Shown in pieces: positions 21,584 through 64,000 of a stretch of DNA of 64,000 bases. Made by a program: the position numbers and the translations under genes. This DNA comes from Cyanophora paradoxa CCMP329 (Eukaryota; Plantae; Glaucophyta): positions 62,001-126,000 of the forward strand of contig QPMI01000129.1 of assembly GCA_004431415.1 (NCBI GenBank), written 5' to 3'. Position 1 is the stretch's first letter. The number at the start of each line of letters is the position of its first letter. A model generated the notes under the pieces. That model worked only from the letters and a program-made list of their open reading frames with translations, was not told the origin of the DNA and did not search any database.

Positions 21584-23936
21584 ATGAACGCCGAGAACTT
21601 CGAAGCGGCGTGCGGCGTGATCCCGGCCAGCTACGCGCGTCAGGCGCAGCAGGGCCGGCGACGGCGCGAGAACCTCATCAAGTCTCTGCTGTCCCAGGTC
21701 CGCCGCGCGCCTCTGCGCGCCTTGTTTCTCACGCCTGCGGTCGGCAGAGGCGCCTTCCGGACGAGGGATGGGACGAGGAGACGATCGAGCTCTTCCTGCA
21801 CGAGCTGGCCGCGATGGACTCGAACAACTTCGTCGGTGCGCGCGTACGCGCGCTTCGCGGCCCAGAGAGTGACCCAGCAGCCCAGATAACGTCGGGGTCG
21901 GGGAGCGGGAGGCGCGCGTCTACAGCGGGATCGTGGCGCGGAGGCACTACCGGATGGCGCACGGCGTCGGGCGGAGCGGGGACGTCGCCGCCTCGCAGCC
22001 GAAGGCCGCCGGGTCGTCCCTCGTCAACTCGATCACCCGCCGCCTCGCGCTCGACGCCGTTCGGATCTGCGGTGGGCGCGCCGTCCGCGTCCGGCGGGCC
22101 TGGGCCGACGGGGAGGGCGGGGCAGGCTTCGTGGACGCGGCCTCGGTGCTGGTGCTGCCGCTGGCGACGGGAATGGCCATCACCATGGCCCTCCTTGCCC
22201 TCCGCCAGGTCCGCGCCCCGACCGCCCGCCCCGCCCCGCCCCGCGCCAGCTGACCGGCGGCCGGGGGCGCAGCAACGGAAGGCGGGGCGGGTGGTGGTGT
22301 GGTCGCGGGTGGACCAGAAGTCGTGCGTGAAGAGCATCGCGGCGGCGGGCCTGGAGGTGGAGGTCGTGGAGGGGGTGCTGGAGGGGGACGAGCTCCGCAC
22401 CGACCTCCCCGCCATCGAGGCCGCGGTCTCCAGCAGGGAGCGCGAGGCGGTGCGCCCGAGCTCTAGCGGGCTGAGTCCTCTCGGGCCATCGAGACGCTAG
22501 GGCGTCGCTGAGACGCTGGCCGTGGGCGCAGCCGGGGTCGGTGCTGTGCGTGGTCTCGACGACCTCGTGCTTCGCCCCGCGGGCCCCCGAGCGCGTCGTT
22601 AAGGCCCGTGCTGGCCCCCCGCCCCCACGCCTAACTAAGCTCAAGAGGGGCGCAGGTAGCGCGCCTGTGCGCGCGCCTGGGGGTCGGGCACCTCGTGAAC
22701 AACGCGTACGGGCTCCAGTCCGCCCGCACCGCCCACAAGCTCTCCAAGGCCTGCAGGAGGCGCCCGCAGCCCTCCTCTCCCCTTCCCCGACCTTTCACTT
22801 AGCCGCCGTACGCTCTCTTAATCGAGCGGGGGCAGAGGGCGCGTCGACGCGGTCGTGCAGTCGACCGACAAGAACTTCATGGTACCCGTCGGCGGCTCCA
22901 TCCTCGCCGCCAAGGCGCGCACTGTACCCCCCTCTCCGCCACGTACCCCCTTGAACCCGACCTCCCGCGGCAGGACCCGACCCTCATCGAAGCGGTCAAC
23001 GGCATGTACCCGGGTACGTGGGTCTACATCGCGCTCTCCCCACTTCCGTGACCCCTACCCCCCTCTAATTCCTGTACCCAGGGCGGGCGTCGTCCGGCCC
23101 GGTGCTGGACCTCTTCGTGACCCTCCTCGCAATGGGCGCCGCCGGCCTCCGCTCCCTCCTCCGCCAGCGCGAGGCGCGTCCCGTACCCCCCTCCCCCTCT
23201 CTGATCTCTGTACCCCCTCACTTCGCCATGGGGCAGGAGCTGCTGCCGGAGATGCGGGCGCGGCTGGCGGCGGTGGCGGAGGCGCGCGGCGAGCGGCTCC
23301 TCCACACGCCCCGCAACCCCATCTCCCTCGGTCCGCCCGGCTTCTCCCATCCGCTCCCGTCCCCCCGCGTCACATCCGACTCACGCCCCTCTCTCGCGCG
23401 CCCAGCGATGACGGTGGACAAGGTGGGGGCGAGCGCCCGGGAGCGCACGCAGCTCGGCGCCATGCTCTACTCCCGCTGCGTCTCCGGCGTCCGGTACCCC
23501 CGCCCGCTCCCTCCCCCCTCCGCCGCCCTCCCGGATCCAGAGTCACGCTGGGCGGCAGGGTGGTGAGCGCGGATGGGCCCTCGCAGAAGGTGGCGGGGCG
23601 CGAGTTCCGGCACTACGGGGCCCACCACGACGCGTACCCCCACTCTTACCTCACCGCCGCCTGCGCCGTCGGCCTCACCCGCCCCGGTCCGACTCCCCGG
23701 CCGAAACGCGTACCCCCGCTGAGAACTGGCACGCCCGCTGGCGCGCAGAGTTCGAGGCGTTCGCGCAGCGGCTCGAGCGGACGCTCGGCGAGCTCGCCAA
23801 GATGCGGGCCAAGGGCGCCGCCGCGGCAGGGGCGGCAGGGGCGGCGGCAGCTCCGACAGAGGGGGCGCCGGCAGAGGCTGGCGTCCGAGCGGACTTTGGA
23901 GGCGACGTCGGCGCCGACGGGGAGGGCGCGCCATGA
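21584..23936 (+). CDS. SEPSECS: O-phosphoseryl-tRNA(Sec) selenium transferase
   Basis: Motifs [58 protein letters not shown] and YPGRAS. I counted 13 introns. Confidence 0.97.
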
Positions 23937-24178
23937 CTCTGCTTTAACATCCAACGAGTCGAGGCGTTCTATCTGGACATCACTCGGAGGGGAGGGTGCA
24001 GAGGGGGGGGGGGGGGAGGGGGGGGGAGAAGCGGGAATGAGAAATGGATGAGAAGTGCGGCGCCCGCAGGGTTTAGGGTTAAGGGATGGGTCAGGTGCAG
24101 GGCGGAGGGGCGCCTTGCACTCGGTGGCGGAGAGGGGGGGGGGATTGGGCGGGGGGGGGAAGGAGGCCAAGGAATCGA

Positions 24179-54809: not shown

Positions 54810-57800
54810 ATGGACGCAGACCGGCACAAGCGCCCCCGCGTAGAGCCGCCCGCCGACGACTCGCCACCAGCCGTCAACTCGTCGGCTCTCATCGAAACAG
54901 TCCAGTTCTTGCTCGACCGGCTCGCCGGGAAGGGCGAATCGTACCGAGTCAAGGTTCTCCGCGGCCGCCAGGGGCAAGGGCCGCCGCAGACCCTGGTCGA
55001 GCTCGTCCCGAGGAGTAGAGGATCTTCGTGTAGAGAAGATACCAGGAACACAGCGATGTGCGCAGGCTCGCCGGGCGCGACAGCGCTTGTCTCCGAGAAC
55101 ACGCTCAGCCTCGCGGACGGTGGTTCCTCGGAGGTGTGTGATGTATGCCGAATTCGTTTCCAATTGTCTCACACAATCGTGCAGCCGAGTCCGTGCACGC
55201 CGGAGATCCGGGAGTGGGCAACAGTCGAGCAGCTTGCGAGCGGTGACAACAATGGGACTGGTACTCGGGAGGGCGCCCTTGCTGCCCCTACCGCGGAAGC
55301 ACCCCAGTTTCGTGCACTGGAGGTAAGACAACGGCGAAGCGCGCTGTGCGCATCGAGCGGGCCGGCAGGTCGACCCTCCGAGTGGATGCCATGGCCAGCC
55401 GCTCAGCGCGCGAAAGCGGCGGCCCAGCGTGAACCAGGACGTGCTCTACCGCTTCGCTATGGAGAATGTCCACGATATGATCTCCATCAACCAGACGGAT
55501 TCCACGGTTCGCCGTTTACTTCGGCTCCTTCGGCGCGCTGGCCACTTTTGATCCGCGGCAGATTGTGTACGTGTCCCCGTCATGCGAGCGCATCTTCGGG
55601 TACAAGCCGAGCGAGATGGTGGGCCGCAAGGGCTACGAGTTCGTGTACCCCGAGGACGAGGTGCCCGCGGCCGCCCGGCCTCGAACGCCCCTCCCTCCCC
55701 GCACGCTGAGACGTCGCGCGCAGCAGACGATTCGGCCGCAGCACGCGGCGAGCATCGAGAGCGGGACGAACCAGGGGACCTTCCGCATCCGCCGCAAGGA
55801 CGGCACCCCGAGGCGAGCGAGCGAGCTGCGCTGCGCTGCGCCCCGCTCCGCCGCGCCGTCGGCTCACGGGCGGCCGGCGCAGGACGGTGGAGTTCCTGAC
55901 GAAGAAGGTGACGGGGCCGGCGGGCACGCCCCCGCCCTCCTCTTCCGCCTCCGCCTCGGGGGCCTCCTCGGGGGACGAGGGCGGCCCCGCCCCCGCCGCC
56001 CCCGCCCACTTCGTCTGCGTCTGGCGGGTGCCCACTTGGCGGCCGCCTGCGCCTCGCCCGCCGGCGCCTCGGCTGAGAGCGGGGCGGGGCGGGCAGGACG
56101 TCACGGAGCGGCAGCAGGTGGAGGAGGAGCGGGCCCGCGCCGAGCGCGAGCGCAGCGCCCGCGAGGCCGTCAGCCAGTACGTCGCCTACACCTGCCACGG
56201 TCCGCCGTCCCCAGCCGGCCGCCCCGCCGCAGGCGGTGGGGAGGCTTCGGCGAACCCGAGCGCTCGCGCGCGCTCCCTGCGGGGAGTGATCGTTCGCGGG
56301 GCGCGGGGCGGGGGCAGAGCTGCGGAACCCGGTGCAGGGGATCCTGGGCTTCGCGCAGCTGCTGCGGGAGGGGGCGGCCGACGAGGTGCAGGCCGGCTAC
56401 GCCGAGGTGCGCCCTGGAGTGGCGCGGGGCGCGGGGCGCGGGGCGCGGGGCGGCGCGCTCGGGCAGGCGCTAACGAGCGGAGCGGGGGAAGGCGGTGGTG
56501 GCGTGCTCGGGCCTCGTGCTGGCCCTCCTCAACGACGTGCTCGACCTCGGGCGGCTCGAGGCGGGGCGGGCCGAGCTGCGGGAGGAGCCCTTTGCGCTGC
56601 GCTTCGCCCTCGAGACGGCCGTCCGCGTCCTCGCGCCGTACGCCGAGGAGAAGGGCCTCGCCCTCGCCGTGCGCCCGCCCCCGCCTCTCTTCCTCTCTCC
56701 GTGGCCCGAGGCCGGCACTCTCGATCCGGGTCTAGCTCGAGCTCCAGGAGCGATGGGCGGCGCGGCGCTGGCTCCTCGCTGACGGGGCAGCTCGCTGGGG
56801 CGGGGGCGCAGCTGGAGGTGGCGGGGGAGGTGCCGGAGATGGCCGTCGGGGATGCCGCGCGCCTCGCCCAGGTCCTGGTGCGCGCGCTCGAGCCGGCCGC
56901 GCCTGCAGCTCGAGCTCGTGCTCCAGCTCGGTCAAGCGCGCTGAGGCGCCCGCCCCGCGCAGTTGAACCTCATCAGCAACGCGATCAAGTACACGCCCAG
57001 CGGCGGCGTCCGCGTGCTCGTCGGCCCCGACCCCGCCTTCGCCGCGGCGCCGGCGCCCCCGGCCTCCTCCTCCCCCGCGCCCTCCCCCGCCGAGTGCTTC
57101 GGGGTGGTGGTGCGGGTGGTGGACACGGGGGTGGGGATCGCGCCCGAGGAGCTCCCCAAGCTCTTCACCAAGTACAGCCGCCTGCGCGCCTCGCTGCCCG
57201 GCGGCGGCGGCGAGGGCGGCCTCGACGACCTCCGCCGCGCCGGCTGCAGCCCCCTCAAGCACTCCACCGGCCTCGGTGCCCCCGATCACGCCCCTCGCTC
57301 CCCTGCCCCTGACGCGCCCCGCGCCTGCGCCCGCCCGCGCGCGCGTGCGCAGGGCTGGCGATCTGCAAGGAGGTGGTGGGCCTGCTGGGCGGCTCGATAT
57401 CCGTGCGGCCGGGCCCCGGCGGCGCCGGCTCCGAGTTCTACTTCACCTGCCGCTTCCGCCACGCCCCGCCGGCCCCCGCCCCCGAGGAGGCCCAGGCCTG
57501 CGCGCCCGGCCACGCGGCGCTCGGCTCGGCCGCCTCCTCCTCGGGGTGCCCCTCGGGCCGCTTGACGCCGGACCGGGGCCTGGGGGCGGCGGGGGCGGGG
57601 GCGGGGCCCCTGGAGTCGCCCCTCTCGGTGCTCGTGGCGGAGGACAACCCGGTGGTGCAGGCGCTGCTGCGGCGGCGGCTCGAGCGCCTCGGCTGCCCCT
57701 GCCGCGTCGTCGGGGACGGGCGGGCGGCGGTGGCCGAGGCGCTCGCCCGCCCGTACGACGCCGTCCTCATGGACTGGGTCATGCCCTTCCTCGACGTGCG

Positions 57801-58117
57801 CGCCCCCGCCTCCGAGACGCCTTGAAGAGGGGCTGACGTCCAGGCAGGGGCTGGCGGCGACGCGGGAGATCCGGGCGAGCGGGTCGCGGGTGCGGATCGT
57901 GGGGGTGACGGCGAACACGCGCCCCGAGGACCAGGCGATGTGCCTCGAGGCCGGCATGGACATGGTCCTCCCCAAGCCCTTCACCGCCCAGCAGCTCCGC
58001 GCCGCCCTCCTCGCCCCCGCCCGCCCCGCCTCCGCCCCTGCCGCCCCGCACTCCCCCTCCCCGCTCCCCTCGCCCCTCCCGGCCCCGGCGGACGCCCGGC
58101 CGGCCCCCACTCCGTGA
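54810..58117 (+). CDS. PAS-domain hybrid histidine kinase (PAS-HisKA-HATPase-REC)
   Basis: PAS YVSPSCERIFGYKPSEMVG, H-box CHELRNP, N-box LNLISNAIKYT, G1 DTGVGI, G2 TGLGLAI, receiver VLVAEDN...LMDWVMP...KPF. Confidence 0.95.
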
Positions 58118-59127
58118 TCCCGTGAGATCAAGATATCTTATTCGCAGCGCAGCTTTGATTATTCTAGTGCCGGTTTGAGGTTCCTGCTTTTTCGTGTGTC
58201 CGGGCGGCCCCCTAGAGCTATGTGTGGCCAGGACCGCGCCATCCTTCAGATTTGATTTTTCTCGAGCGCTAAGAGATAGGTCTCAGAACAGCTGCCATGG
58301 ACTTGCTCCCGATCTCTTTCCCCTGACCGCCTTCGGCCATGTACCATAGCACGCTCCCTAGTAATTTTTCAAACCAGCTTCCGAGGCTTCAGCTGCAAGG
58401 AGTTTTTGAGTGCGAGTGCCCGTCTTAGTTCCCAGCCCGGCAGACTCACGCGCATCTGGTGATCTCATGATTACCGAAAGACCTTCATCATTTATAGTCT
58501 TAAAGAACATAGCCCGTTATTCAATGATTTATTCGCTTGTCACAGTGTTGCATCGGTCCCGGGTGCAGTGTGTCTATCGTAGTATTCGGTATTCTCGACT
58601 CCATAATGTCATAGACTATACCTCGACCACCCATCAGACTCGCGATTCACTGAGTCAGGACCGGAACCGGGAACTAGTACTACGGTACTCGAGAGCTGGA
58701 GGCTCGCCGAGTCGAGGGTCTGACGGTCGACGTCCGATGATCCGGGGATCATCATCGGATCCGGATCCGGATCCGTCGCTATACTATGATAGGCCTAGGG
58801 TGCCAAGGGGCGTGTACCGTAGTCTGCCGCCGCGGCGCGGGTCCGGTAACAAACGGTAGACCTCCTTTTCAAAGTTTCTCAGAGTCTAGAACTCGGGCCC
58901 CCCGGACCGCACTGCGGCATTACTATGATTAATATGTTGTAGATCTCGCACGAGCTGGGTAGACATGCATGGATCGATATCATTGAATATCTCAATGAGA
59001 ATCTTCGCAAAAAGAGTGCCCGCGGCCGACAAAAAGCAAAGATCTAGATCTAGGGCCACGCATAAATTAAATAAACCCCGGAAGGAGAGTTGAAGGCGCC
59101 AAGACGGCGCGCGGCTGACGGCCGCGG

Positions 59128-62100
59128 CTAGGCAAGGGGGGCAAACTCGTGGTGCCCGACGCCGAGCCCCGCCGCCGCCGCCGCCGCCGCTGCCGCCTCC
59201 GATTCTCCGTGCGAGCCCTCCTCCTGCGCCGGCCCCGGCGCTCCAGTCAAGAATTGAAAAGTGTGGCGGCCGGGCGCCGAACATGAAGGAGGAGACGTGC
59301 ACAGATCTAGACGTACCACGAAGGGGCCTAGGTCCAGACCGGCCGCCTCCGCCCAGAGGCCGGAACAGAGCGACGCCTCCTCGGCTCCCGCCGCGCTGTA
59401 CGCTTCGACCACCGCCGCGCCGGCGCTGCCCCCCGCGGCCGCGGCCGCCGCCTCCTCTGAGGAACCCTCCTCGGCAGATTCGAACCCGTACGAGGCCGCG
59501 ATCGCCGCCACCTCTGCGGCGCACAGTCAGAGATCTAGAGCGGGCCGCGAGGCGGGGAAGGGGGAAGGCAAGCCGCGCCGGGGCGGAGGCCTACGCTCGC
59601 GTGGCTCTCCGCGACCTGGGGCGCCGCGTCTAGGCGCGCCTCTGCCGCCGCCGGGGCAGGCCCCTCCTGCGGTTCCGGCTCCGAGGCGGCCGCGGCAGGC
59701 CCTTCTTGCGGCTGCTGCTCCGCGGGCGTAGACTCCTCTTGTGGCTGTTGCACTGCGGGGGTAGACTCCTCCTGCGGTTCCGGCTCCGAGGGCATAGACT
59801 CCTCTTGAGGCTCCTGCTCTGCGGGGGTAGCTATAGGCCCCTCCTGCGGTTCCGGCTCCGCGGGCGTAGACTCCTCTTGAGGCTCCTGCTCTGCGGGGGT
59901 AGGCCCCTCCTGCGGTTCCGGCTCCGAGGGGGTCGGCCCCTCTCGAGGCTCCTGCTCTGCGGGGGTAGGCCCCTCCTGCGGTTCCGGCTGGGCGGCCCAC
60001 TTTTCGGCCGCCGCCGCTGCCTTTTCCTCTACCGCCCCCTTGGCCTTCTCCTTCCCCTTGTCCAGCGCCTATTCCGGTCGCGTCCGTCCGACGGTCATCT
60101 TGAGGGGCGGGCAGCAGCGGGCTCGCGTCGCACCTTTTTGCCCCACTTCTTGGCGCGGCTCTTGGCGCCATTCTTTCCGGCCTGCGGCAATCGTGTGGGA
60201 GGAGGGAGGCGCAGGAGCCACGAAAGCACGGCTCCAGCAACGGATTCGCCCTCGGACCTTCTTCGCCCTGCCCTTCGCCGCCTTGGCGCCCTGCCGCGAA
60301 GCTCCCGCTCTCAGCGGCGGAGCCGAGCGGGGGTACAGCAGCATCGAAATCGAATGCACACCTGCTTGATGGCCTTCTTTCCGGCCTTGCGGCTGTGCTT
60401 GAGGCCCTGCGCGGCAGATCGGGCCTCGGTGAGGCGCCAGGGGGAGGAGGGGGCCCCGCCGGCGCGCCTGCTTCCCGAGCTTCTTGGCGCCGGCCTTGGC
60501 CATCGCCTGCGAGGTCGAGCGCGATCGATGAGGGGCGTGCGTGGGCGGCCGGGGGCAGAACACGGGCGGGGAGCGCGCCTTGCCGCCCGCCTTCCCGCCC
60601 GCCTTGAGGGCTGCCTTGGACGCCCCTTTCACCAGCGCCCTGCGCGCGCTCGCCGGCTCGGGCCGAGGAGGCGCGGAGAGGGCGGAGCGGGGAGGCCGGC
60701 GGGGGCGCCGGCGGGGGCGAGGGCGGCGACGCACTTGGCGCCGGCCCTGAGAACGGCCCTGCGTGCCGGCCGCTTGCGTTCGGTGCGCGGCGTTGCCCCC
60801 GATCGAAGAGAGGGCGCGAGATCTAGATCTAGAGGGCGGCCGGGGCCGGGTGCGGGCGGAGGTGGCGCATGCACGTGCGCACTTGCCGACCGCTTTCGCG
60901 GCGGTCTTGGCGGCGACGCCGAGGGCGGCCCTGCGCGGGGCCCCCGGGGCCGCGTAAGCTGGAGGGGACAAGGCGTTGGGGTGGAGGGGAGGCGGAGGCG
61001 GAGGCGCATGCGCATGCGCACTTCCCCGCGACCATGCCGATGCCGACGCCGGCGCCGGCGCCGCCGGTGGCGACGGTGACGGCGACGCCGGCCCCGATCG
61101 TCGCCGCTGTCGTCCCGATATCCGTCGCCAGCGACACCTGCCGCCCCATCTCGATCGCGATCGCGCTTCGGGGCGAGATCTAATGCGGGATGGACGCTTC
61201 GAAGCGGGCCGCCTCGGGCCCGGGCCGGGGCGAGAAGGGCGGCGGTGGGTCGAAGTCACGAGGCGCGCAGGGGCGCGCGAGCGCGCATGCTTGAGCGTGC
61301 TTTGAGCCCACGCTTTTAACTTCAACGCTTTAATTCGATTTGGATCTAATCTGGGAGCGCACGCCGTGCTTGAGCATGCCGTGCACGTCGCCCTTTGCCG
61401 CCGACTGCACGAAGCCGTGCCCAGTCTCCACGTAGTCTGGAGCAGTCGAGGAAGCAAAGCTTGGTGAGCGATCGAGCTCGAGGGCCAGGCGTGCGCATGC
61501 CGGGCCGGGGCCGGGCGCATGCACCGCCGACGATCGGGACCTGCGACAGAGCGCGCTCCGCATCAGAGGACAGCGGGGGTGACGCAAATGGAGGAGGGGG
61601 CGGTGGGCATGCGCCGCACCGTCTTCGCGAGACCGAGGCCTGCCGCGCACGTGCACCCCGGAGCAGCGCCGCCCGTCAAGAGCGCCCACACCGATCGAGA
61701 GGGGACGCGGGTCGGAGCCGGCCCGCACCGTGCTTCGCTATGCCTGCGGCCGACGTCGAGGCCACGATCAGCGGCGGGGCGGGGCGGGCGGGGACTCCGG
61801 CACGGCCTGCAGCTAGCTATAGGGCGGCGGGGCGGGGAGGGCGCGGACCCTTGAAGTTGCCGATCTTGATCGACTGGTCGAGGGGCGCCCCCGCGTCAGC
61901 GTGTTCCGCGCCGCGGGGATGACGGGGGGGGAGGGGGGGGGGCGGTTGGGGGGGGTTTGGGGGGGGGGGGGTGGGGTGGGGGTGGGGGTGGGGGAAGAAA
62001 GAGGGGGAGGCCACCTTAATCAAGCCCTTTCCGCTCTTCACCATCTCTGCGCAGGAAAGGGTGGGGGGGTTAGGGACAGTGGTCGCCCCGCGGGCGCCGC

Positions 62101-63131
62101 ATCGCACCGGGGATCTTGAGGGCCTGGGGGGAGGAGGGGGGAGGTACATGAGCGCGGGAACTGAAGTCGAAAGAAAGAAAGGGAGGGGGTGGACAGTAAA
62201 GGCGCACGTCCTTGCCGAACGTGAGGGCGGACTTGCCGAGGCCCTTGAAGTTGCCCTTCTTCAGCATCTGCGCGCCCGAGTCAGCGGCCCCGCCTCGAGC
62301 CCGAGCGCCCCTCGCCCCTCGCCCCTCGCGCCTTCCAGTTCTGCTTCATGCCGGCGATGCCGCCCTTCACCATGTTCTGCGCGTCCGATGCGAACTTGCC
62401 CACCACCGGGATCTGACCGCGTGCCCGGTTCGCTTCATGACGGGGGGGGAGGACCCCCGGGGAGGGGAAATGCGGGGGGGGGTACAGTACCTTGCTCGCG
62501 AACTTGGTGGTCTTGTCCAGCGCTTTCTTCGCGAATTTGAGACCCCCCTTCGCGGCCTTCTTGACACCCTTGAAGCCCTGCGCGCGGGCGGCTCAGTCGG
62601 CAAAGGGCGCGCCTGTGGACGGCGTGCCCCTCCGGCTATAGCTATAGCTAGGTCGGTAGAGCGCTGGGCCCTTTATGCAGAGGCGGGGCGGCCTCCGGGC
62701 TGGGCCCGGACGGGCCATGGCCGCCGGGCGCCAGCACGCGGAGATCCAGCCCTAGATCATTGCTGTATAGGCCACGGGCACGGATCGGGGGCCTTGGGCG
62801 ACTTGCCTTCTTGGCGACATTCTTGACCTTCTTGAACCCCTGCGAGCGCGCGAGCGGAGTTGGTCGCCTGCGCTACGCGATAGGGCAGATCTTGCCGCGC
62901 GCGCGCGCGGTCGCGCAGTGGCCGTATGCATAGCCGGCGCCGGGCCGGGGCGGTGCTGGCGCATGGCGCGCTTCGGATCCGGATGTTGATCATACCTTTT
63001 TTACCTGCGTCCGTCCGGCCCGCAATCGCGTCAGGACTTTGCGTGGCGGCTGGCGCGTCTAATCTGATCGAGGAGAGCGGGGAACGGCGCGCCTTCTTCT
63101 TGACCTTCTTGAACAGCTTCTTCAATCCCAT
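59128..63131 (-). CDS. Orphan micro-exon gene: Lys-rich amphipathic repeats, Gly/Ala hydrophobic hairpin, acidic E/P/Q repeat C-terminus
   Basis: Short exons with CAG acceptors and GT/GC donors: MGLKKLFKKVKKK|VKK|GFKKVKNVAKK|GFKGVKKAAKGGLKFAKKALDKTTKFASK|IPVVGKF... ending GHHEFAPLA*. Confidence 0.7.
59660..59990 (-). repeat. 30-bp coding repeats (EPEPQEGPTP / AEQEPQEEST)
   Basis: Recurring CTCCTGCGGTTCCGGCTCC and CTCTTGAGGCTCCTGCTCTGCGGGGGTAG on the + strand. Confidence 0.85.
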
Positions 63132-64000
63132 GGCCGGCGCCGCTGACGCGCACGCCTTGCAGGCAAGAGCAATGCCTCGTCAGCAGGTGCACGGGCCCGC
63201 CACCGTGGCCGGCTTGTCCCTCGGAGGCGGGAACGCCTGCGGCCGCGCCGTACGCGTCACGCCCGCGTCGCTCGGCTCCTTCGGAGATCGACTCGGCGAG
63301 GCCAGCTGCAACTGCAGCTGCTGATCGACTCCACGCCGCGTCACACTCCTGGCGTTCGTTGATTGAGCCCGGCCCGCTCGGGTCGTCGCCGGCGCAGCGC
63401 CGCGCGTGCGCGGCTGACGCAGGCTTGCTGCGGCTGGCTGAGCGTCGCAGAACGCAGCCGATTAGCTGCGCATGTCAACAGGCTTCCGCCGCCCTCCGGT
63501 CTCCGGTCCGATCCGAAGCTCTGTGGCCGGGATCCGAGCGCGTTCATCAGAGCCAAATCCGTACCCCCCCAGTTCGAAGTCACAGCTGCGCACGCACGCC
63601 TTTGCATGCATGCGTATGTGGCAATAATAATCGCGATTCGCGAGGCCCTGAGGACGATCGCGAATCTAATAGAGTTAGTACTACGGTAGATCTGCGCATG
63701 CTGCGCGTTGGGCGTCCGCCAGCCGCCCGGCCGCCGCGAGAAGGGCAAACCAGCTGCAGTTAGATCCTAGCTGGCACACTCAAATTTAAAGAAAGGACAG
63801 CGCCGCGGCGCGGCGAGGAGGGGGCCGAGCGCTAGCGCTAGCAGGGTACGGGGAGGGGTGGGGGTGCGGAGCAGTTCTAGACGAACGGGGCGGCCGCGCG
63901 GGCCGCAGGCCAGGCCCGGGGGAAGTGCAGACGGAACTTTGGAAGCGGTGGGCGGAGGGGGCGAGAGGGTGAGTGGCAGGAGGCGGACCGGAAGGGAGGT

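Follow-up and report, generated by a model that had tools for sequence, protein, structure and literature searches.

MARCKS, BASP1 and GAP-43 bind membranes electrostatically under a regulatory switch, and an aromatic-plus-basic recipe is common to electrostatic membrane binders such as the MARCKS effector domain and polybasic motifs. A different kind of modular design is found in the tropoelastin gene, which has many tiny Lys/Ala or Gly/Val/Ala exons, many of them frame-symmetric and thus open to skipping without loss of frame. Among lipid-binding proteins with 11-residue repeats, perilipin 4 carries charges of +3/-2 per 33 residues and has a very weak moment, and net positive charge directs such helices to negatively charged membranes (PMC5889406). 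Here we describe a gene of the glaucophyte Cyanophora paradoxa CCMP329 (NCBI GenBank assembly GCA_004431415.1) whose predicted product recalls these systems. The gene lies on the minus strand, from 63131 to 59128, of the window that we analysed, a stretch of 64,000 nucleotides (nt) of contig QPMI01000129.1 (positions 62,001 to 126,000 of the forward strand), in whose own numbering all positions are given. It appears to be a lineage-restricted nuclear orphan in which known kinds of modules stand in a new arrangement. We tentatively read its product as a cytosolic, largely disordered three-part protein that would bind anionic membranes electrostatically and have its acidic PEST-like tail as regulator.

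In the order of its parts the predicted protein resembles alpha-synuclein: in both, 11-residue repeats precede a Gly/Ala/Val core, an acidic Pro/Glu tail closes the chain, and helices are expected to form only on membranes. There is no sequence relationship between them, however, and the predicted protein is four times longer, has pure-lysine helix faces (+5 to +7 per 11 residues) where alpha-synuclein has mixed faces of the KTKEGV type, and alone has a second basic block behind the hydrophobic segment. With MARCKS, BASP1 and GAP-43 it shares a Met-Gly start, a polybasic Phe-containing stretch and an Ala/Glu/Pro-rich, acidic, PEST-like remainder, but it has Leu at position 6, its basic part covers 300 residues instead of 25, and there is no homology. 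The organisation of the gene, with many small Lys/Ala or hydrophobic exons, many frame-symmetric, resembles that of tropoelastin, although vertebrate elastin is secreted into the matrix and its hydrophobic modules are proline-rich, and nothing here suggests secretion. If our reading is true, this protein would be an algal, four-fold enlarged analogue of the synuclein/MARCKS design, assembled independently by exon duplication, and a test case for a charge-block membrane switch.

Results

Direct reading of the minus strand gave 24 exons that join in frame into 1686 nt, that is 561 codons followed by TAG (Table 1). This chain is predicted from genomic DNA alone, its junctions being deduced, and several intrinsic properties argue that the gene is real. 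The G+C content (GC) at codon positions 1, 2 and 3 is 0.68, 0.51 and 0.86, with 0.73 in the introns, which are C-rich, and lysine is encoded 69 times by AAG and 6 times by AAA. The 23 introns have GT (18) or GC (5) donors, among which GTGCG occurs nine times and GCGCG four times; their acceptor is CAG in 21 cases, and 12 of the 23 have a branch-like CTNAY motif 13–28 nt before it, compared with a background of 12% of random windows. The introns are 61–229 nt long and the window has about 70% GC, values consistent with those published for C. paradoxa (67.6% GC, 9.2 introns per gene, mean intron of 86 bp; PMC6704402). Sixteen codons before the ATG the reading frame is closed by a TGA, and AT-richer stretches flank the gene at 58200-59000 and 63600-63800. 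Intrinsic support for this orphan micro-exon gene is therefore strong; neither a transcript nor an annotated protein of it was found. The Cyanophora genome thus seems to hide a class of real genes that finders based on open reading frames (ORFs) or hidden Markov models would miss, because their exons are short (9–116 nt). In intron 8 a run of about 70 nt (61924-61994) consists almost entirely of C when read on the coding strand, and of G on the plus strand.

Phase 0 is limited to exons 1–6 and 18–24, whereas exons 7–17 are of mixed phase and chain without a stop; within this central part the micro-exons 7–12 are Lys/Gly-rich. An exon finder based on dynamic programming, whose splice matrices came from other introns of the same gene, recovered exons 7–11 exactly and gave 61540-61532 plus 61404-61363 as an alternative for exons 12 and 13. 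The 9-nt exon 2 is dispensable for the frame, which is kept when it is skipped, but its acceptor is preceded, at 26 nt, by a branch-like CTGAC that favours its being real; this exon and the exon 12/13 borders are uncertain. A first-pass annotation of the same stretch had proposed first exons of 39, 9, 33 and 87 nt, all of phase 0, and 11-residue units GLKKLFKKVKK, GFKKVKNVAKK, GFKGVKKAAKG and GLKFAKKALDK, all of which our reading reproduced. Its hydrophobic stretch lies in exon 14, its Lys/Ala/Gly exons are exons 15, 17 and 18, and its acidic repeat tail is exon 22. The exons that it listed are thus present, but its list lacked exons 5–13, 16 and 19–21, and so passed over about nine micro-exons of mixed phase.

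The predicted product is strongly segregated in charge: its N-terminal 307 residues sum to +68, its C-terminal 254 to -45. Exons 1–13 encode 169 residues with a net charge of about +36 and 10 Phe, and exons 14–21 encode 138 residues with a net charge of about +32, exons 15–21 forming a proline-free Lys/Ala/Gly block; in the whole basic part 78 Lys stand against 4 Arg. The tail begins in exon 22, with about nine 11-residue acidic, Pro-rich units of the PEPQEGPTPAE type (net charge -30), and continues in the Ala/Glu-rich exons 23–24 (net charge -15). P, E, S and T abound in it, with repeated TP/SP.

The four 11-mers of exons 1, 3 and 4 have the pattern G-[LF]-K-x-[LVA]-x-x-x-[VAL]-x-x in common, and the periodicity becomes irregular after exon 4. 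The first three contain neither Asp nor Glu, and in the first units Phe, Leu and Val form one face while the opposite face is all lysine. Together with the 10 Phe of exons 1–13, this lack of acidic residues fits the aromatic-plus-basic recipe of electrostatic membrane binders. The hydrophobic moment (muH) is 0.58–0.69 in exons 1, 3 and 4; in exon 4, where muH is 0.59 at a best angle of 98 degrees, none of 2000 shuffles reached a value as high (p<0.0005). AlphaFold, run without an alignment, predicts exon 4 as one helix spanning residues 4–28, with a predicted local distance difference test (pLDDT) score of 84. Helical amphipathicity is also significant (p<0.05) in exons 3, 5, 8 and 19. The 11-residue (33-nt) modules recall perilipins and apolipoproteins, in which such modules form a long amphipathic helix, and 98 degrees is the value of a 3-11 helix. 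The likeness to perilipin and synuclein drawn in the first-pass annotation thus stands for the tandem 11-residue amphipathic repeats and their angle, and fails for family membership (no Pfam match) and for the polar face, which is not of mixed charge. A charge of about +14 per 33 residues without acidic residues predicts binding to anionic bilayers and not to lipid droplets. A perilipin-type lipid-droplet coat was accordingly rejected, the first units being devoid of acidic residues and no family match having been found.

The N-terminus, MGLKKLFKKVKKK, is lysine-rich and has no hydrophobic core, so that no signal peptide is recognised, in agreement with the first-pass annotation; nor was a signal-peptide exon found upstream, where the in-frame stop lies. 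No recognisable processing sites were seen in the predicted product. We also considered a cyanelle transit peptide. Cyanelle-targeted proteins have F within the first 10 residues, an uncharged hydrophobic N-terminal module and a Ser/Ala-rich body (PMC4510345). Phe7 agrees with the first of these traits, but the protein has 7 Lys in its first 13 residues and no Ser/Ala-rich stretch, and this candidate was discarded.

Exon 14 encodes a 38-residue Gly/Ala/Val/Thr stretch with a hydrophobic segment of about 30 residues. Glycines at positions 26, 30, 34 and 38 and at 28 and 32, with 68% small residues, give it glycine-zipper spacing, and it has the GxxxGxxxG and GxGxGxG patterns of glycine-zipper segments in a Gly/Ala/Val/Ile stretch. 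Its hydrophobicity is borderline, with a mean Kyte-Doolittle value of 1.5–1.6 and unweighted Hessa costs adding up to +3.7 to +4.7 kcal/mol, and AlphaFold (again without alignment) predicts a helix over residues 3–24, a break at GGAGAGV and a short helix, with a mean pLDDT of 74. The segment thus seems too short and too weakly hydrophobic, and a classical inserted two-helix hairpin is unlikely. The closest look-alike, helix 1 of ATP-synthase c/K subunits, is not significant (PDB E 0.23; NCBIfam E 0.08–0.6, with scores of 10–13 bits against cut-offs above 100), and exon 14 lacks the second hydrophobic helix and the carboxylate site of these subunits. It also lies near bacterial glycine-zipper clusters, at a non-significant language-model score of 0.77–0.81. 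Likeness to c subunits and glycine zippers would therefore be a matter of composition, not of membership. The first-pass annotation had compared this region with the hairpin of SipB-type translocators. This comparison did not hold, as there is no SipB/IpaB family match in Pfam at E<=10 and no long two-helix hydrophobic hairpin.

Searches for relatives were run on single exons or stop-free ORFs. Pfam and NCBIfam gave nothing above noise for any exon of at least 20 residues, and Pfam gave nothing at E<=10, whether cecropin, magainin, dermaseptin, perilipin, synuclein, Apolipoprotein, IpaB/SipB, Linker_histone, HMG, Gly-zipper or c-subunit. The word-index protein search, limited by its length window (0.55–1.75 times the query) and by low-complexity words, was blank for a 483-residue stop-free ORF that carries exons 15, 17, 18 and 20 in frame, for residues 295–351 of this ORF (exons 17–18) and for exon 22, and a look-up of the exact 483-residue product found no record. 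When the C-terminal ORF (exon 23, in-frame intron and exon 24) was put to 1.84 billion representatives in a full HMMER search, two spurious bacterial repeat proteins were all that came back, and a metagenome locus scan with exon 23 gave no confirmed locus. In the PDB nothing was found for exons 4 and 5, and only the weak c-subunit look-alikes were found for exon 14. In the language model exon 4 lies nearest to dermaseptin and frog-peptide clusters, but its score of 0.82 is attained by shuffled sequences one-third of the time; the scores of the non-significant look-alikes of exons 4 and 14 are often reached by shuffled sequences. Rfam found nothing in the window, tblastn of the exons, the paralogue search proposed in the first-pass annotation, found no paralogue within these 64 kb, and the literature yielded no description of a comparable lysine-rich protein from Cyanophora.

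The gene contains several internal duplications. Direct repeats tie the ends of exons 1, 3, 18 and 21, donors included; exons 15 and 16 match as a direct repeat, acceptors included; and a GNFKG direct repeat links exons 6 and 9. Introns 14 and 15 share 78% identity over their first 40 nt (60848-60887 and 60987-61026), and the acidic tail is a tandem array with a period of 33/66 nt. As these repeats are exon-intron units, the gene appears to have grown by duplication of exon-plus-intron-junction units. Within the repeats of exon 22, one unit has an in-frame 6-nt ATAGCT insertion (59829-59834) that gives PIATP in place of PTP. The same motif, of the CTATAGCTA type, recurs in introns 3 (62639-62650) and 9 (about 61814), and a small mobile element may have left it behind. 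Palindromes of the AGATCT and TAGATCTA types are over-represented, TAGATCTA occurring four times in the window against 0.1 expected. Introns 2, 13, 15, 22 and 23 and the 3' untranslated region of the gene hold 8 of the 26 AGATCT sites of the window. The tandem form CTAGATCTAGATCT occurs twice (59040-59052 and 60819-60831), and further sites are at 59303, 59531, 61176 and 62887. These palindromes could be a short dispersed element or a stop-codon-bearing intron filler.

Table 1. Predicted exons of the gene, in order of translation (positions in the window)
Exon	Positions	Strand	Length (nt)	Features
1	63131-63093	-	39	phase 0; start codon; GLKKLFKKVKK-K; donor GCGCGC
2	63004-62996	-	9	micro-exon, phase 0; VKK; optional, unverified
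3	62839-62807	-	33	phase 0; GFKKVKNVAKK; donor GCAAGT; muH 0.69, p 0.02; shares a DNA repeat with exons 1 and 4
4	62577-62491	-	87	phase 0; GFKGVKKAAKG-GLKFAKKALDK-TTKFASK; strongest amphipathic helix
5	62412-62332	-	81	IPVVGKFASDAQNMVKGGIAGMKQNWK; amphipathicity p 0.0035
6	62267-62208	-	60	MLKKGNFKGLGKSALTFGKD; GNFKG DNA repeat in common with exon 9
7	62123-62108	-	16	micro-exon; recovered by exon finder
8	62046-62015	-	32	micro-exon; recovered by exon finder
9	61873-61849	-	25	micro-exon; recovered by exon finder
10	61743-61729	-	15	micro-exon; recovered by exon finder
11	61639-61620	-	20	micro-exon; recovered by exon finder
12	61540-61525	-	16	micro-exon; end uncertain
13	61436-61363	-	74	(D)YVETGHGFVQSAAKGDVHGMLKHG; 5' border uncertain (alternative 61404)
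14	61137-61022	-	116	Gly/Ala/Val/Thr hydrophobic segment; GxxxG / GxGxG glycine zipper
15	60930-60883	-	48	Lys/Ala/Gly
16	60758-60735	-	24	Lys/Ala/Gly block
17	60639-60579	-	61	Lys/Ala/Gly
18	60506-60468	-		phase 0; Lys/Ala/Gly
19	60406-60362	-		Lys/Ala/Gly block; amphipathic, p<0.05
20	60290-60258	-		Lys/Ala/Gly block
21	60181-60134	-		Lys/Ala/Gly block
22	60068-59595	-	474	Lys/Glu/Ala link, then acidic Pro-rich repeat; net charge -30; PEST-like
23	59511-59317	-	195	acidic, Ala/Glu-rich; ends in SLCSGLWAEAAGLDLGPFV; NAGNAG acceptor (cagag)
24	59223-59128	-	96	acidic, poly-Ala end; stop TAG 59130-59128; AT-rich 3' flank beyond

Discussion

The absence of a signal peptide suggests that the protein would be made in the cytosol, and we think that it would attach to membranes from outside and not lyse them. 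The lysine-faced helices might fold on acidic lipid surfaces and lie flat on them, while the glycine-zipper segment would dip into the bilayer or self-pack as a shallow anchor. The PEST-like, Ser/Thr-Pro-rich tail could fold back on the basic part and switch binding off electrostatically, with phosphorylation or proteolysis to tune the switch; alternatively, it might project from the membrane as a charged brush. Several observations weigh against this proposal. The helices have a low mean hydrophobicity, between -0.15 and -0.38, which would make binding almost wholly charge-dependent, and nucleic acids would fit such binding equally well. Behind the hydrophobic segment the Lys/Ala/Gly exons are not significantly amphipathic, exon 19 excepted. 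Since no homologues were found, there is no conservation signal, and exons 1–13, each shorter than 30 residues, lay outside the large-database searches. Finally, N-myristoylation, considered in view of Gly2, was rejected: position 6 is Leu, and the PROSITE PS00008 pattern requires a small residue there.

If electrostatic binding to membranes is not the function of this protein, it may, with rather low probability, be a nucleic-acid or chromatin binder, in which the Lys/Ala/Gly block would bind DNA or RNA like a linker-histone tail and the acidic tail would auto-inhibit as in HMGB. A basic body followed by an acidic tail is a classic chromatin-protein layout. The charge of +68 with 78 Lys, the AKAAK- and KKAGK-like non-amphipathic runs of exons 15–21, and KKVKKK and KKWGKK, which resemble nuclear localisation signals, all agree with this. 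It is, on the other hand, difficult to reconcile with the significant amphipathicity and regularly spaced Phe of exons 1–8, and a 30-residue glycine-zipper segment would be odd in a chromatin protein. Moreover, no linker-histone or HMG domain match was found in Pfam, and the basic region lacks proline and S/TPKK, unlike H1 tails. Linker histone H1 itself, membership of which the first-pass annotation had named as an outcome that would speak against its proposal, was rejected for want of a winged-helix domain match and of S/TPKK in the basic region, exons 15–21 being devoid of proline.

That the protein is a block-polyampholyte scaffold, in which opposite halves self-associate into a membrane-less condensate or a cortical matrix and lipid is not bound, is unlikely. 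The extreme charge segregation (+68 versus -45) and the low-complexity repeats present in both halves speak for such a scaffold, but neither amphipathic periodicity nor a glycine zipper is needed for coacervation, and the protein has both.

The first-pass annotation had favoured a membrane-lytic protein, pore-forming or antimicrobial, that would be neutralised by its own acidic tail and might be diversified by exon skipping. In the form considered here, cationic helices of a lytic precursor would be masked by the acidic tail and unmasked by proteolysis, with bacteria or the peptidoglycan-walled plastid as target; this we regard as doubtful. Anionic propieces neutralise cationic peptides in defensins, and the KKLFKK start resembles cecropin-type N-termini. 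With cecropin, magainin and dermaseptin the gene product shares short, lysine-rich amphipathic helices with far more K than R, and a cecropin-like basic helix is followed by a Gly/Ala/Val-rich part. The lysine-only polar faces and high K:R ratio are in agreement with the preference for lysine over arginine in helical antimicrobial peptides, which organelle targeting peptides do not share (PMC10363480). Phe7 meets the F-in-first-10 trait (PMC4510345), but the N-terminus is lysine-rich and not a Ser/Ala-rich, uncharged cyanelle module. The proximity of dermaseptin and frog-peptide clusters in the language model points the same way, at a chance-level score. Thus the part of the first-pass claim that concerned amphipathic, lysine-rich 11-mer helices is borne out, while the likeness to antimicrobial peptides finds no family match. 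In addition, these modules lie inside a 561-residue, cytosolic-looking protein that lacks a signal peptide and recognisable processing or propeptide sites, and the hairpin shows no kinship with translocators. Lytic peptides have broader and more hydrophobic faces; the non-polar faces seen here are narrow, and their mean H of -0.15 to -0.38 is that of weakly hydrophobic ones. Nothing points to hole-punching, and a lytic or antimicrobial role, though possible, has no support. If such a role were real, it would be relevant to the proposal that plastid targeting peptides have an antimicrobial origin.

It is improbable that we are dealing with a young, repeat-expanded gene that has no fixed function, or with a gene model that is partly wrong. 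The lack of relatives in the searches made, the internal exon-intron duplications, the two uncertain borders and the failure to find a transcript could be understood in this way, but the consistent signals of 23 introns, a frame kept over 561 codons and the strong codon bias (GC3 0.86, AAG:AAA 69:6) speak against it. Least probable of all is that the gene is one member of a lineage-specific set of self-neutralised, antimicrobial-peptide-like Cyanophora proteins with lysine-faced helices aimed at the peptidoglycan-walled cyanelle or at bacteria. If true, such a set would represent, in a living organism, the arsenal of host peptides proposed as the source of organelle targeting peptides.

Other features of the window lie on the plus strand. 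An antisense ORF of 457 codons (59706-61079) overlaps the gene and is most likely a high-GC by-product; bidirectional ORFs of that kind are discussed in PMC6704402. The convergent neighbour (55565-58117) looks like a hybrid histidine kinase, with a PAS fold at 55565-56473 and a response-regulator receiver end at 57890-58117, and its 3' end faces the gene over the AT-richer spacer at 58200-59000. Farther away, an ORF at 22855-24051 has a short SepSecS-like fragment at its start, and a large exon at 25940-28468 matches RSN1_7TM (OSCA/TMEM63-type calcium-permeable channel) with an E value of 1.5e-14.

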